Origin: Octopus sinensis
Taxonomy: Eukaryota
Direction: 5' to 3'
NCBI RefSeq assembly: GCF_006345805.1
Contig: NC_043021.1
Span: 11,346,001 to 11,410,000, forward strand
DNA length: 64,000 nucleotides
The stretch's first letter is position 1; every line of letters begins with the position of its first letter. Made by a program: the position numbers and the translations under genes. Positions 17,173 through 53,804 of this stretch are shown in pieces. A model generated the notes under the pieces. The model searched no databases, was not told the origin of the DNA, and was given only the letters and a program-made list of their open reading frames with translations.

Positions 17173-17266
17173 TTAGACAGATAACTGGTTGTAGTAAGGG
17201 TTGTTAAAATGGCTTTCTTGTGTGTTCACATCTTCCATGTTCACCAAAAGATCATCTTGGTCAGAT
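17173..17266 (-). CDS. Terminal coding exon 14 (cytoplasmic tail with FxNPxY)
   Basis: tatttcag|A SDQDDLLVNMEDVNTQESHFNNPYYNQLSV* with phase-2 entry matching exon 13. Confidence 0.85.
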
Positions 17267-18929
17267 CTGAAATATAGCTTACTGAACAGGCTCCTATAAA
17301 AAAAAAAATTTTTTTTTAAATCAGAGAAAAATGCAATAATTATCAAGTGTGTATGTGTGTGTATATTGTATATATATAGTGTGTGTGTGTATGTATGTAC
17401 ATACGTATGTATGTATATATATATATATATATATATATATATATGCATATATATCTATATAATATATACATATATATATATATAATATATATATACATAT
17501 ACATACATATATATATATATATATATATACATATACATATATATATATACATATACATATATATATATATATATAATACATATATATATACTATATATAT
17601 ATATATATACATATATATATATATATACTATTATATATATACATATATATATACATATATATATATATATATATATATATATACATATAGATAAATATAT
17701 ACATCTATATATATATACATATATTACATATATATATATATACATATCTACATATATATACATATATATATATATATACATATATATACATATATATATA
17801 CATATATATATATATATATATATATATCTATATATATATATATATATATATATATATATACATACATATATATATATATAGATATATCATTATATACATA
17901 TACATATAGATGTAGCATATTTTATTTTGCTCAGAGCATTGCATGGCATCAGAATTTTCAACTGAAGTCAAACACAAAAAACAACTACTCCGAATTGTTG
18001 TTAGGTAATTCACTTAAGTCAAATCAAGACCTGCCTGTTTGTGCTGACATTAAGTCGTATGAACTATAATCATGAAGTCAAGCCAAACAATGATAATTTG
18101 AAAGCATTTAATACACACGTTTCCGATTTCCCATTACGCAAGATCTTCTTCATTTAACGTCTGCTTTCCATGCTAGCATGGGTTGGACGATTTGAGTGAG
18201 GACTGGCGAACCAGATGGCTGCACCAGGCTCCAATCTGATCTGGCAGAGTTTCTACAGCTGGATGCCCTTCCTAACACTAACCACTCCGAGAGTGTAGTG
18301 GGTGCTTTTACGTGCCACCAGCACGAGGGCCAGTCTGGCGGTAGTGGCAATGGCCATGCTCAAATGGTGCTTTTTACGTGCCACCTGCACAGGAGTCAGT
18401 CCAGCGGCACTGACAATGACCTCACTCGAATGTTTTATTCACATGCCACCGGTACAAGTACCAGTAAGGCAACACAGATAACGATCATGTTCAAATGGTG
18501 CCTTTTTACGTGCCACTATCTGGTGCAAAATGGCATTACACAAATAAATAGTTATTATCTACGAATAACCTATCGCAGAAATAGATGTTAACACAGAACG
18601 CAACTCTTACTACTCAAACATAGGCATGATACTCAGTATTCACTGTTCAGCTACCGACTGTCAAACCAACACGTCAAACTTACACCGTCAACGACATCTT
18701 GACGGTTCACTCAGTTCTTATTTATTGTTGAAGAGCATGCAGATTGATCAAAATGGTATTCTAAAAATTCAGTTGGTTGAAGCATTCTAAGAGGTACAAA
18801 GGTTGTCAAGAACTCAACTGTCATTTAAATACATTTGAAATCTGATGAGTACACTATGTGTGAAAGCGCTAATTTTGTTAAAATACCATAATAAACCAGA
18901 CTATGTTTTAACTTTATTCAACTTATATA

Positions 18930-19325
18930 TACTCTTTTTTACTCGTTTTACTTGTTTCAGTCATTTGACTGCGGCCATGCTGGAGCACCGCCTTTAGTCG
19001 AGTAAATTGACCCCGGGACTTATTCTTTGTAAGCCCAGTACTTATTCTATCGGTCTCTTTTTGCCGAACCGCTAAGTGTCGGGGAACGTAAACAACCAGC
19101 ATCGGTTGTCAAGCAATGCTAGGGGGACAAACACAGACATACAAACACATACACACACATACACATATATACGACAGGCTTCTTTCAGTTTCCGTCTACC
19201 AAATCCACTCACAAGGCATTGGTCGGCCCGGGGCTATAGCAGAAGACACTTGCCCAAGGTGCCACGCAGTGGGACTGAACCCGGAACCATGTGGTTGGTT
19301 AGCAAGCTACTTACCACACAGCCAC
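18930..19325 (-). mobile_element. tRNA-derived SINE family A, young subfamily
   Basis: Full head-to-tail copy, near-identical to 22035-22435, 36860-37268 and 62185-62607. Confidence 0.85.
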
Positions 19326-19459
19326 TATAATTTGGGAAAACAAATTTCCAAATCAATCAGATGTAACCCTACAGCATTATATGCATCCATATATTGTACT
19401 TTGGGGTCTTATTTATCGTATATTTATATATTTATCTATAAATATTCTAAGTATCTGAT

Positions 19460-19705
19460 AAAATACCAGCTCTACCTGCGACGATTTCATCTCAATCGAA
19501 GGAGAGGAGCTTTCTCCATCCGGGTTGCGGATCCGTGGAACAAGCTGCCAACGACCGCTTTGTTCAAAGCCTCCCGGACCTCAAGTGGCCTGAACTCTTT
19601 ACATGAACACCACCCTGTACTTAACTCCATGTCCCCCTACATGGCCTTGCTATTTGCTTTTGAGCCAAATTAACTAACTAACTAACTAACTAACTAACTA
19701 ACTAA
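19460..19705 (+). mobile_element. CR1/L2-like LINE 3' end
   Basis: RRGAFSIRVADPWNKLP resembles the ORF2 C-terminal motif; ends in a (TAAC)n tail. Confidence 0.7.
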
Positions 19706-50745: not shown

Positions 50746-51940
50746 TCTGTGGAGCGCTCAGCCACTTAATTTCACAAGCAGGCTGTTCCATTGGTTGGAT
50801 CAACTGGAACCCTCATTGCCATAACTGACAGAGTGGCATATATATTATAGACACCAGAACCTTAAGAGTATGTTTGTCTGTGGAGCACTCAGCCACTTGC
50901 ACATTAATATCACAAGCGGGCTGTTCCATTGGTTGGATCAACTGGAACCCTCATTGGCATAACTGACAGTGTGGCATATATATTATAGACACTAGAACAT
51001 TAAGAGTATGTATGTCTGTGGAGCGCTCAGCCACTTGCACATAAATATCACAAGCGGGCTGTTCCATTGGTTGGATCAACTGGAACCCTCATTGTCATAA
51101 CTGACAGAGTGGCATATATATTATAGACACCAGAACATTAAGAGTATGTATGTCTGAGGAGCGCTCAGCCACTTGCACATTAATTTCACAAGCAGGCCGT
51201 TCCATTGGTTGAATCATCTAGACACCAGAACATTAAGAGTATGTATGTCTGTGGAGCGCTCAGCCACTTGCACATTCATTTCACAAGCAGGCTGTTCCAT
51301 TGGTTGAATCATCTAGACACCAGAACATTAAGAGTATGTATGTCTGTGGAGCGCTCAGCCACTTGCACATTAATATCACAAGCGGGCTGTTCCATTGGTT
51401 GGATCAACTGGAACCCTCATTGTCATAACTGACAGAGTGGCATATATATTATAGACACCAGAACATTAAGAGTATGTATGTCTGAGGAGCGCTCAGCCAC
51501 TTGCACATTAATATCACAAGCGGGCTGTTCCATTGGTTGGATCAACTGGAACCCTCATTGTCATAACTGACAGAGTGGCATATATATTATAGACACTAGA
51601 ACATTAAGAGTATGTATGTCTGTGGAGCGCTCAGCCACTTGCACATTAATATCACAAGCAGGCTGTTCCATTGGTTGGATCAACTGGAACCCTCATTGCC
51701 ATAATTGACAGAGTGGCATGTATATTATAGACACCAGAACATTAAGAGTATGTATGTCTGAGGAGCGCTCAGCCACTTGCACATTAATTTCACAAGCAGG
51801 CCGTTCCATTGGTTGAATCATCTAGACACCAGAACATTAAGAGTATGTATGTCTGTGGAGCACTCAGCCACTTGCACATTAATTTTACAAGCAGGCCTTT
51901 CTGTTGATTGGATCAACTGGAACCCTCCTTCATTGTCGTA
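50746..51940 (+). repeat. Satellite array derived from the SINE family B tail (138- and 95-bp units, ~10 units)
   Basis: gtctg(t/a)ggagc at 50876, 51014, 51152, 51247, 51342, 51480, 51618, 51756 and 51851; matches 4135-4240. Confidence 0.9.
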
Positions 51941-52238
51941 ACCGACAAGGAGCCAATAGCAGTAACATTGCAGGTTAATAAAACATTTGGAAACCCAAAC
52001 TTCAGTGTTACCATTGCCCACAAACGCAACCTACCTCACACTTCAAACAACCAACAAAGGACACATGGCTAATTGTCTCACTAAACGTGTACCTGAAACA
52101 CAGTCCAATATATTCCTCTACAGAGTGGGGATGGTCATGCCAGGGATCACAGCTCTGCACTTTAGATCACAGCTCTGCTGGATTATGATTGATCTGGCAC
52201 TAAACAACCACGACGATAATAAGAAATAAGAAACTTAC

Positions 52239-52360
52239 CCGATGCTGCTGTTTACGTCTAATGAGAAATTTGTAAAAGAAAAATTTCCGCTGCCACCATC
52301 GTAGAATTCTATAAAATCCTCCTGTGCATTATTACCAATATACACTTCACTGATCCACAC
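52239..52360 (-). CDS. Coding exon 2 (start of LTD-like domain 1)
   Basis: ttaacag|VWISEVYIGNNAQEDFIEFYDGGSGNFSFTNFSLDVNSSIG|GTAAGT, phase 0 to 2. The ISEV...FIEFY motif is typical of lamin-tail domains. Too short for the ORF track. Confidence 0.85.
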
Positions 52361-53720
52361 CTGTTAATAATAATAATAATAATAATTTTGTCTTGGTATA
52401 AAAGACGGGCTACAGCAAATATTCTGTTTTAAGGAGGACAACATAGAGAAAAATATTTTGTTAATAATAGTAGTAGTAGTGGTAGTAGTGGTGGTGGTAG
52501 TAGTAGTAGTAGTAGTAGTAGTAGTAGTAGTAGTAGTAGTAGTAGTAGTAGTAGTAGTAGTAGTAGTAGTAGTAAGAATAATGATGATGATAATAATAAT
52601 AATAATAAATGCCCGGATGCAGTACCAGGCTGTGGCTCTTGTGGTTTCTGATCTTAACTGATTGGAAGTGTTATCATGAACATTGTTCTGTCTTGGTATA
52701 AAAGATGGACTACAGCAAATATTCTGCTCAATACCACAGATTTGCTTGTCAGTTGTTTGACCTTAACCAGTTGAACATGTCTCTTGGTGGCTGACAATAT
52801 GTGCATCTCTGATCATGAGCAGAAGTAGTGGGGGAGCATCATAGCCATGTGTTGAGAGGGATTCTTGGAAGTTTGGGGGTTTGATGTAATTGACTAGCTT
52901 CCCTCTCCAAGAATTTCAGGCCTTGTACCTTTAGTAGAAAAGGATTATTATTATTATTGTTGTATTAAAACTCACAGCTTACACATATATATATATGTGT
53001 GTGTATGTGTGTGTGTGTGTGTTTGGGTGTCTGTGTTTGTCACCTCAACATCACTTGACAACCGATGCTGGTGTATTTACGTCCCCATAACTTAGCGGTT
53101 CAGCAAAAAAGACCGATAGAATAAGTACTAAGCTTACAAAGAATACGTCCTGGGGTCGATTTGCTCGACTAAAGGTGGTGCTCCAGCATGGCCACAGTCA
53201 AATGACTGAAACAAGTAAAAGAGTAACATCATTATCATTTAACCCTTTTGATATCAACCCAGCTAAAACTGGCTCTGAGTACAAATGTCTTGTTTCCATA
53301 AGTTTTGAATTAAAATCTTCCACTAAACCTTAGTCACAATTTATGTTCCTAACTCTAGCTTAATGATAACTAAGTTATTTTACTAAATTCTTTGTTATAT
53401 TTAAAGTAAATGAAAGAAACACAGAGCATTTAAAATAAATACAGTAACGAAAGGGTTAATGTCCACTTGTCATGCTAGCATGGGTTGGACAGTTTGACTG
53501 AAAACTAGTAAGCTAGGGAGCTGCACCAGGTTCCAATATGATTTGGCAGGGTTTCTTATGGCTGGATGCCCTTCCTAATGCCACATAGTTAAAAATCAAG
53601 AAAGGGGTAAGATCAAGACAGAGAATGATCAAGAGAGAGAAACATACAAAAGGCAGTACAGATAATGATGAGGATCAAAAAAAAAAATAGAGAGAATGGA
53701 AAGAGAAAGTGAAAGTATAC

Positions 53721-53804
53721 CTTTGGCAGTGTTTCGGTGAGTGAAAGACATGTGGAAGCCAGCAGCAGTAGTAACAATAAGTATGGTAAAATTTTAGCGG
53801 ACAT
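53721..53804 (-). CDS. LTD-repeat membrane protein, coding exon 1 (signal peptide)
   Basis: MSAKILPYLLLLLLLASTCLSLTETLPK. Acceptor tttcag|AA ATG, donor AAG|GTATAC, phase 0. Confidence 0.8.

Follow-up and report, generated by a model that had tools for sequence, protein, structure and literature searches.

What does a gene of Octopus sinensis encode when the RefSeq name of its product is "serine-rich adhesin for platelets-like"? The gene lies on the minus strand of a 64,000-nucleotide stretch of DNA (contig NC_043021.1, positions 11,346,001 to 11,410,000; the window hereafter, in whose own coordinates all positions are given). A previous inspection of the letters alone, called here the sequence-only reading, had taken it for an orphan type I receptor with three extracellular domains resembling lamin-tail domains (LTDs), a mucin stalk and a tail carrying an FxNPxY motif. 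Our analysis of the gene, of its relatives and of the rates at which its parts evolve suggests that the product may be a fast-evolving surface receptor or membrane mucin, internalised through clathrin, whose ectodomain changes almost as fast as silent sites while its cytoplasmic tail is frozen.

Gene structure

We located the coding pieces through minus-strand stop-to-stop segments and tblastn searches with two octopus proteins. The coding chain runs on the minus strand from 53804 to 17173 and consists of 14 exons, each flanked by AG and GT and consistent in phase, with borders fixed by hand. The frame is open across all 14 exons, which span 36.6 kb, and every splice site is canonical. The spliced coding sequence of 2586 nt translates into 861 aa that match XP_036369161.1 of O. 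sinensis (P0003 among our protein identifiers) letter for letter, and the 14-exon gene is real. The gene limits given by the sequence-only reading, 17173-53804, were exact at both the stop end and the ATG, and its 13-14 exons with consistent phases agree with the 14 found here; its product of 834-843 aa fell short of 861 aa, 17 aa having been missed through use of an earlier exon-11 donor. The exons are as follows, R1, R2 and R3 being the three ectodomain modules discussed below.

Exon 1, 53721..53804, minus strand: aa 1-28; start codon at 53804; signal peptide predicted by hydropathy (MSAKILPYLLLLLLLASTCLS) at 53742-53804
Exon 2, 52239..52360, minus strand: aa 29-69; N-terminal half of the putative LTD R1 (VWISEVYIGNNAQEDFIEFYDGGSGNFSF...)
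Exon 3, 48431..48587, minus strand: aa 69-121; middle of the putative LTD R1 (SLDGLQTNSKGFLVLSAN...)
Exon 4, 46043..46067, minus strand: micro-exon of 25 nt, aa 122-130 (IHTIIRRS); AG/GT and phase fit
Exon 5, 41932..42236, minus strand: aa 130-231; end of R1 (..NVVICYED..NNCP) and start of R2 (VHIEQVSLL.. SLDGVTT..)
Exon 6, 38919..39035, minus strand: aa 232-270; R2 (..ILDGVAFGNG..)
Exon 7, 37530..37583, minus strand: aa 271-288 (TYPYLYPPKEQAIPYFEL); R2
Exon 8, 32213..32945, minus strand: aa 289-533; end of R2, Ser/Thr linker (32295-32831) and start of R3 (VLKINEISL..WVELK)
Exon 9, 30637..30791, minus strand: aa 533-584; putative LTD R3
Exon 10, 28997..29160, minus strand: aa 585-639; putative LTD R3 (..LVDCVSY..), with a predicted local confidence (pLDDT) of 80-88 in the AlphaFold2 model
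Exon 11, long form, 24649..24881, minus strand: aa 639-717; end of R3 (WTINFCG..FQVAGPS..NLCPS) and start of the juxtamembrane domain
Exon 12, 23525..23725, minus strand: aa 717-784; remainder of the juxtamembrane domain
Exon 13, 20345..20459, minus strand: aa 784-822; predicted transmembrane helix TVTIAVLLSLLVVFVFIVVSVCLY (20371-20442), then the stop-transfer sequence KYKRK
Exon 14, 17173..17293, minus strand: aa 822-861 and the stop codon; tail with DQDDLL (17245-17262) and FNNPYYNQL (17182-17208)

The residues of the micro-exon are also found in the O. vulgaris and O. bimaculoides proteins. Domain borders do not follow exon borders: the R1/R2 border falls inside exon 5, and exon 8 encodes both the linker and the first part of R3. 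Exon 11 has two in-frame GT donors 51 nt apart (24649 versus 24700/24699), of which the distal is the one used in the O. sinensis RefSeq model and the proximal the one used in the O. vulgaris annotation CAI9740790.1. The proximal donor drops 17 aa (24650-24700), giving an 844-aa product. Since these 17 aa (RKLSEKSCCMISKDFIE) have conserved counterparts in P0006 and P0007, two distant relatives, where they align with VQKISANEGCMVSDAFFLD, the long form is the better model; the two donors may reflect alternative splicing or an annotation error. At 53805-53807, 2 nt upstream of the start ATG, there is an AG after a pyrimidine-rich tract (tctctgtttcag). To judge from the sequence, a further-upstream, unannotated exon of 5' untranslated region probably precedes the first coding exon.

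The homolog P0006, of 814 aa, is collinear with the octopus protein across all 13 junctions and is found on intronless contigs of 3.0-3.3 kb from two runs (SRR6517992 and SRR30931882). Because a gene with 13 introns in octopus is uninterrupted there, these contigs can be taken for transcripts, and they indirectly support co-transcription of the exon chain.

Protein architecture

There are only two hydrophobic segments in the protein, at aa 1-~23 and ~790-813, the second followed by KYKRK. Together with 34 N-x-S/T sequons, nearly all of them in the ectodomain, this makes the product, as far as can be predicted, a single-pass type I membrane glycoprotein with a signal peptide, one transmembrane (TM) helix and a short tail. 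The topology put forward in the sequence-only reading was thus right, and its estimate of about 30 sequons was close to the count. The parts are the following.

Signal peptide, aa 1-~23: predicted by hydropathy
R1, aa 27-162: putative LTD
R2, aa 163-326: all-beta region that ends in a CxC...NCxxxC cluster
Ser/Thr linker, aa 327-505: 51% Ser plus Thr, 9.5% Pro and 10 sequons; disordered in the model
R3, aa 506-672: putative LTD
Juxtamembrane domain, aa 673-786: alpha/beta
TM helix, aa 790-813: hydropathy peak of 3.26; helix 789-827 in the AlphaFold2 model; followed by KYKRK
Cytoplasmic tail, aa 814-861: 48 aa

The Ser/Thr region, modelled with a pLDDT below 30, is mucin-like, as had been noticed, and presumably heavily O- and N-glycosylated. 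As it is located between R2 and R3, it is not the membrane-proximal stalk of ~180 aa that had been proposed; by its position in the sequence it is an inter-domain linker. The cysteine cluster that ends R2 (CxC...NCxxxC, aa 299-320, ~32850-32915) is common to O. sinensis, O. vulgaris and the distant P0006. In the O. bimaculoides protein (P0002) this four-cysteine cluster is gone, through substitutions and a 14-aa deletion.

A frozen tail below a fast-evolving ectodomain

The FNNPYY sequence (aa 851-856), an FxNPxY motif, lies C-terminal to the sole TM segment, as the sequence-only reading had seen, and is conserved in the cephalopod relatives and in Lingula. Beyond it, the tail holds an acidic dileucine signal, DQDDLL, which matches [DE]xxxL[LI], and a YxxPhi signal, YNQL, that starts from the NPxY tyrosine. 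FxNPxY, YxxPhi and acidic dileucine motifs are canonical clathrin-adaptor signals, and NPxYxxL is the composite signal of the LRP1 tail. The FxNPxYxxPhi composite is kept as FRNPTYSQL in P0006, FHNPTYSQL in P0007 and FNNPLYSKI in Lingula, and the acidic-Leu cluster is kept in all relatives, Biomphalaria (DEDDLI) included. Between the window and O. bimaculoides, 36 of 36 tail residues are identical.

In order to compare the rates at which the parts of the protein change, codons of the window were paired with those of the O. bimaculoides locus and analysed by the method of Nei and Gojobori; the values thus come from one species pair and a simple method. The ratio of nonsynonymous to synonymous divergence (dN/dS) was 0.70 for R1 and 0.70 for R2, 0.90 for the linker, 1.57 for R3 (bootstrap 0.88-3.25) and 0.48 for the TM exon; for the whole ectodomain it was 0.90 (bootstrap 0.71-1.18). 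The tail gave a dN/dS of 0, with 0 nonsynonymous differences over 89 nonsynonymous sites and a dS of 0.11. The nonsynonymous difference of the tail (0 of 89 sites) is far below that of the ectodomain (18%; Fisher p = 8e-8). With an intact frame and a frozen tail, the gene is clearly maintained. The ectodomain appears to change almost as fast as silent sites, in a regime that these comparisons suggest is near-neutral to possibly positive.

Lamin-tail domains in the ectodomain

The sequence-only reading saw three LTD-like repeats in the ectodomain. The motifs that it quoted for them are literally in the sequence, but "three repeats" cannot rest on internal similarity, because the pairwise alignments do not rise above chance: Smith-Waterman alignments of R1, R2, R3 and the juxtamembrane domain against shuffled sequences gave z of at most 2.1, and hhalign comparisons of R1, R2 and R3 among themselves all gave probabilities below 3%. 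R1 and R3 rise above chance only in comparison with LTD profiles, and R2 does not do so even there. The Pfam LTD family (PF00932) matches R1 with 19.6 bits and an E-value of 0.0012 as a fragment, and with 15 bits within the full protein (threshold 34.3 bits), and does not match R2 or R3.

We scanned 1.84 billion representative proteins with HMMER, using a profile of the O. vulgaris and O. bimaculoides proteins (P0001 and P0002). Eight proteins were found at E <= 1e-3, namely the octopus proteins, P0006, P0007, the Biomphalaria protein P0011 and three bacterial proteins. Two of the bacterial proteins, P0008 (E 5.6e-8) and P0009 (E 2.4e-6), match the N-terminal half of R1; R1 and P0009 share 41% identity over 71 aa. 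Pfam recognises triple LTDs in P0008 and in P0010 (102 and 69 bits). The best non-molluscan matches of R1 are bacterial tandem-LTD proteins. A homolog in the brachiopod Lingula anatina (P0016) scores 49.8 bits against the Pfam LTD, which is above threshold, and aligns with R3 (twice), R1, the juxtamembrane domain and the tail. Its LTDs align with R1 and R3 including a C-terminal ..RC..NxCP extension, and the start of R3 aligns to the INE..IEL motifs of Lingula and bacteria. The Lingula array is moreover 33% identical to the bacterial P0009 over 381 aa (E 9e-42), in line with the bacterial-like LTD that had been proposed.

When R1 and R3 were compared by hhalign with a profile built from Lingula and bacterial LTD units, both matched over the full domain length, R1 with 97.6% probability (E 1.9e-11, 130 columns) and R3 with 89% (E 2.6e-7, 158 columns). 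The match of R3 takes in the C-terminal extension ...W/S-I-x-R-C...F-x-V...P-S/T-P...N-x-C-P. R2 gave at most 0.2% against the LTD profile and less than 1% against R1 and R3, whether the mode was local, relaxed or global. Scores with an LTD hidden Markov model fall in the same order, at 21.8 bits for R1, 6.7 bits for R3 and -2.7 bits for R2, and a BLASTP stretch in R2 is collinear but non-significant (28% over 82 aa, E 1.7). Profile-profile and transitive evidence therefore supports R1 and R3 as bacterial-type LTDs. The third of the proposed repeats, R2, gave no signal in any profile test; by position and motif it may be a degenerate LTD.

What can be drawn from structure prediction is limited. 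AlphaFold2 gave pLDDT values of 53-76 for R1, 65-88 for R3 and ~40-53 for R2, an eight-strand all-beta region. A Foldseek search of the PDB with the full-length, low-confidence model returned the lamin-B1 tails 3jt0_A and 3umn_B with probability 1.00, a root-mean-square deviation of ~4.2 A and E 0.046-0.048, the matching domain not being reported by the tool; these tails had the best target-normalised TM-scores in the list (0.56-0.59). At the level of sequence, phmmer searches of PDB sequences with R1, R3 and a Lingula LTD gave chance matches only, and no lamin. Fragment searches of Pfam also gave matches to Reov_VP3_GTase, Transglut_C, InlK_D2, Comm and others, which are below cut-off and absent from the relatives and were rejected.

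The juxtamembrane domain

Beside R3, next to the membrane, the protein contains an alpha/beta domain of ~110 aa that the sequence-only reading did not describe. It is the best-predicted part of the P0007 model, with a pLDDT of 80-91 and the order beta-alpha-beta-beta-alpha-beta-beta. With Foldseek no match reached significance; EpCAM came first (E 0.018), and ACT domains, dystroglycan and an entry for a MUC16 antibody complex (8gkl chain E, E 0.11) were also among the best. These matches are ferredoxin-like alpha/beta sandwiches, and on the strength of the model a ferredoxin-like alpha/beta fold class is plausible. Pfam searches of five family members, with E up to 5-10, found neither SEA (PF01390) nor another family in the domain, and a profile of the domain gave chance matches only, and no SEA, against PDB sequences. 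A single weak match of the octopus protein to Amnionless (PF14828), running from the juxtamembrane domain through the TM helix into the tail (E 0.029, 13.6 bits versus a cut-off of 30.4) was absent from four relatives and was rejected.

A family in molluscs and a brachiopod

O. vulgaris and O. bimaculoides share this gene structure, and protein identity between two Octopus species is ~67%. The deposited models of both species are defective. That of O. vulgaris (P0001) begins with a spurious N-terminus, exons 1-2 being absent from it. That of O. bimaculoides (XP_014769565.2, 621 aa) is truncated, ending by read-through after exon 10, because a 3470-N assembly gap in CM046625.1 (L003 23443-26912) covers the place where exons 11-12 belong; the TM and tail exons are found downstream of the gap, at L003 28672-28785 and 30262-30369.

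Farther away, P0006 and P0012, each of 814 aa, are ~30-33% identical to the octopus protein and collinear with it from the signal peptide to the C-terminus. In the snail Biomphalaria glabrata, the proteins P0011/P0014 are arranged differently: a mucin repeat forms the N-terminal part, and after it come a single LTD-like unit, the juxtamembrane domain, a TM helix and an acidic-dileucine tail. They are named 'cell wall protein DAN4-like' which, like the name of the octopus protein, is an automatic label driven by Ser/Thr composition. The closest non-molluscan relative is the Lingula protein introduced above (LOC106164224, 856 aa; E 9e-21 with the family profile), encoded by a genuine animal gene of several exons. 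It shares with the octopus protein the juxtamembrane domain, the single TM helix and tandem LTD units whose ends read ..SRC..TPG..NxC(P), and its tail likewise contains an acidic cluster, together with FNNPLYSKI. It differs in having at least three full, Pfam-positive LTDs and a partial one, no Ser/Thr linker and no counterpart of R2; the N-terminus of the Lingula model looks incomplete. The intron in octopus R1 and that in the second Lingula LTD have phases 2 and 1 and an alignment that is ambiguous by up to 3 residues, and we claim no shared position.

The family thus includes so far the three Octopus species, P0006/P0007/P0012, Biomphalaria and Lingula, that is, molluscs and a brachiopod. 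Its orphan status, asserted before, holds: neither the HMMER scan of 1.84 billion representatives nor word-index searches found a characterised ortholog. The word-index searches returned octopus proteins and Lingula only; as they missed P0006, P0007 and P0011, which HMMER found, absence from them says little. Literature searches by accession, LOC identifier and SRA run found no papers on family members, and no paralog was found within the window.

Proposed function and alternatives

How could these parts work together? The sorting signals suggest that the protein would reach the cell surface and be taken up continuously via clathrin-coated pits, with AP-2 drawn in by the dileucine and YxxPhi signals, and adaptors with phosphotyrosine-binding (PTB) domains of the Dab2/ARH/Numb type by FxNPxY. 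Because signals of this kind would drive uptake by AP-2 and PTB adaptors, the protein may be a receptor for endocytosis or recycling, or else a membrane mucin that is internalised. Its ligand-facing part would be the ectodomain with its LTDs, and a changing ectodomain above a frozen tail would fit a surface that keeps pace with changing partners, for instance microbes, environmental polymers or gametes. On the sequence evidence we give this reading, a fast-evolving, clathrin-internalised surface receptor or membrane mucin, a probability of about one in two. The ligands named in the sequence-only reading (nucleic acid, glycan, microbes) are speculation. What LTDs do in bacteria is itself unresolved (PMC6085458). 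Deletion of the LTD from the nuclease ExeM lowers but does not abolish its activity, and either membrane targeting or DNA binding has been proposed for the domain (PMC6085458, PMC4486849), the latter in PMC4486849.

Known proteins resemble the octopus protein in parts. Receptors of the LDLR/LRP type are type I proteins whose short tails contain FxNPxY, in some cases joined to YxxL and with dileucine signals besides, and they are taken up by clathrin via PTB adaptors and AP-2. They are built from LDL-A, EGF and YWTD modules, none of which Pfam finds in P0003. Only a short linear motif is shared, and no homology. Bacterial tandem-LTD proteins (P0008, P0009, P0010) and the LTD of Shewanella ExeM have the same domain type, with the signature INE...FIELYDGG..GN..L..DLDG...GF.vL, and are extracellular as well. 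In contrast to the octopus protein, they are prokaryotic, soluble or cell-surface proteins that lack a mucin region, a juxtamembrane domain and any TM helix joined to an endocytic tail; the end of P0009 looks by eye like a type IX secretion sorting domain, and P0010 has a dockerin. The human lamin B1 tail (3UMN, 3JT0) belongs to the same Pfam family and was the structural match of the low-confidence model described above, but lamins are nuclear, have a coiled-coil rod and show no detectable direct sequence similarity to the octopus protein.

Several observations weigh against our reading of the protein. NPxY also serves signalling and cytoskeletal adaptors, as in integrin beta tails, and uptake is not the sole reading of it; the tail of Biomphalaria P0011 is without NPxY. 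All LTD scores of the octopus protein lie under the Pfam gathering threshold of 34.3 bits, the full-length AlphaFold2 model (nine sequences) is poor overall with a mean pLDDT of 46.9, and Foldseek found nothing in the PDB at E < 1e-3 with it. Finally, the ectodomain dN/dS of ~1 and the loss of the R2 cysteines in O. bimaculoides could reflect relaxed constraint on a bulky glycosylated spacer.

This last point leads to the alternative that survives best, which we nevertheless hold to be unlikely: a membrane-tethered mucin, adhesion or barrier glycoprotein, for example of skin, sucker or gut epithelium, that provides bulk, lubrication or adhesion, uses its tail for turnover or signalling and depends little on the exact sequence of its ectodomain. 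SEA mucins such as MUC1, MUC13 and MUC16 are type I proteins with a glycosylated Ser/Thr region, a membrane-adjacent alpha/beta domain of ~110 aa and a short sorting tail. A glycosylatable region rich in Pro, Thr and Ser (aa 327-505) is common to them and the octopus protein, and its 51% Ser/Thr content, together with the 34 sequons, would suit such a role, as would the ectodomain dN/dS of ~0.9 and the cysteines lost in O. bimaculoides. The predicted beta-alpha-beta-beta-alpha-beta order of the juxtamembrane domain would share topology and position with the SEA/EpCAM-C domains of membrane mucins (EpCAM E 0.018, MUC16 entry E 0.11). However, these Foldseek matches are non-significant and SEA is unmatched in Pfam and PDB sequence searches; the mucin region of the octopus protein is not adjacent to its alpha/beta domain, and LTDs are foreign to mucins. 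Furthermore, LTDs, juxtamembrane domain and tail all persist in the Lingula relative, which has no mucin region; the mucin part is therefore not the conserved core of the family, and the three persisting parts are more likely to be what matters for function. The absolute conservation of the three sorting signals argues that trafficking is central.

A bolder form of the endocytic reading, more conjectural and in our view rather improbable, would have the tandem LTD array acquired from bacteria by a brachiopod/mollusc ancestor and fused to an animal cassette of juxtamembrane domain, TM helix and sorting tail, to become an endocytic recognition receptor whose cephalopod ectodomain diversifies in an arms race with microbes or gametes. 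What bears on it is that the Lingula array, 33% identical to P0009, has no detectable sequence similarity to lamin tails. LTD-like domains have been noted in bacteria and in several non-lamin eukaryotic proteins, left uncharacterised, by Koreny & Field, who raised a prokaryotic origin of the LTD (PMC5630835).

It is more doubtful still that the protein serves in gamete recognition or in the distinction of self from non-self, with an ectodomain driven by sexual conflict or allorecognition. The fast ectodomain above a frozen tail, the dN/dS of 1.57 in R3 and the ~67% identity between two Octopus species are what such a role could produce, but the bootstrap range of R3 (0.88-3.25) spans 1 and comes from a single species pair.

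An annotation artefact or a decaying gene, with mis-joined or unexpressed exons and a dN/dS that stems from pseudogenisation, is very improbable: an ectodomain dN/dS near 1 and the lack of an above-threshold Pfam domain are set against an intact frame in 14 exons over 36.6 kb with canonical splice sites, the same structure in O. vulgaris and O. bimaculoides, a tail with 0 nonsynonymous changes despite a dS of 0.11, full-length collinear transcripts of P0006 and a domain order kept as far as a brachiopod. True kinship with the bacterial serine-rich adhesin for platelets (SraP) can practically be dismissed, as only the automatic RefSeq name speaks for it, presumably given for Ser/Thr compositional similarity, whereas this is a spliced animal gene of 14 exons with neither an LPxTG motif nor an SraP-type Pfam domain, and a search without the Ser/Thr region returns octopus proteins only and no bacterial adhesin.

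Other features of the window

The window is AT-rich, repeat-laden animal DNA. Several introns of the gene contain tandem arrays, which are listed here with the dispersed repeats and the transposon-like open reading frames (ORFs).

34842-36520, intron 7: 56-bp minisatellite of ~30 copies with 94% match and a GC content of ~0.50 versus ~0.38 elsewhere; it gives rise to spurious ORFs, the longest of 700 aa, on either strand
42299-43299: 110-bp tandem array of ~9 copies that ends 63 nt upstream of the exon 5 acceptor
50766-51915, intron 2: interleaved tandem units of 138 bp and 95 bp
21092-21714, intron 12: tandem array of 208 bp x3
29735-30216, intron 9: tandem array of 167 bp x3
19076-19330, 22022-22258, 25270-25500, 26138-26380, 30860-31144, 37024-37362, 41531-41809 and 62359-62784, both strands: examples of a dispersed short repeat
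47118-47384 (plus strand), 5418-5705 (minus strand), 31298-31648 (plus strand) and 6745-7425 (minus strand): transposon-like ORFs

The dispersed repeat, whose translation contains ..LPNPLTRHWSARGYSRRHLPKMPRSGTEPGTMWLVSKLLTTQPLL.., often lies by TA/CA microsatellites, is also present at the O. bimaculoides locus and looks like a short interspersed element. By eye, the four transposon-like ORFs resemble the C-termini of mariner transposases (..HPPYSPDIAPSDF.LF..), gag with CCHC knuckles and a fragment of reverse transcriptase; this is unconfirmed, and Pfam gave no match to any of the four at E <= 0.01.

Significance

Lineage-restricted orphan receptors are common in lophotrochozoan genomes, and the octopus protein belongs to a familiar type, that of single-pass glycoproteins whose tails carry adaptor-binding signals, but is made up of unusual modules. 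No established view is overturned by it. A misnamed RefSeq model gains a defensible description, and the truncated or altered models of O. vulgaris and O. bimaculoides are explained. The analysis also defines a small, unnamed lophotrochozoan family composed of one or more LTDs, an alpha/beta juxtamembrane domain, a TM helix and a tail with acidic-Leu and FxNPxYxxPhi signals, in which the frozen tail and the near-neutral ectodomain form a clear, testable evolutionary signature. To our knowledge, LTDs outside lamins are essentially uncharacterised in animals. The family is relevant to the question, posed in PMC5630835, of a prokaryotic ancestry of eukaryotic LTDs, and, if the acquisition from bacteria were true, a bacterial binding module would have been domesticated as an animal surface receptor. 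As a surface protein that is probably internalised and built from LTDs, the octopus protein would offer a tractable handle on what the LTD fold binds.

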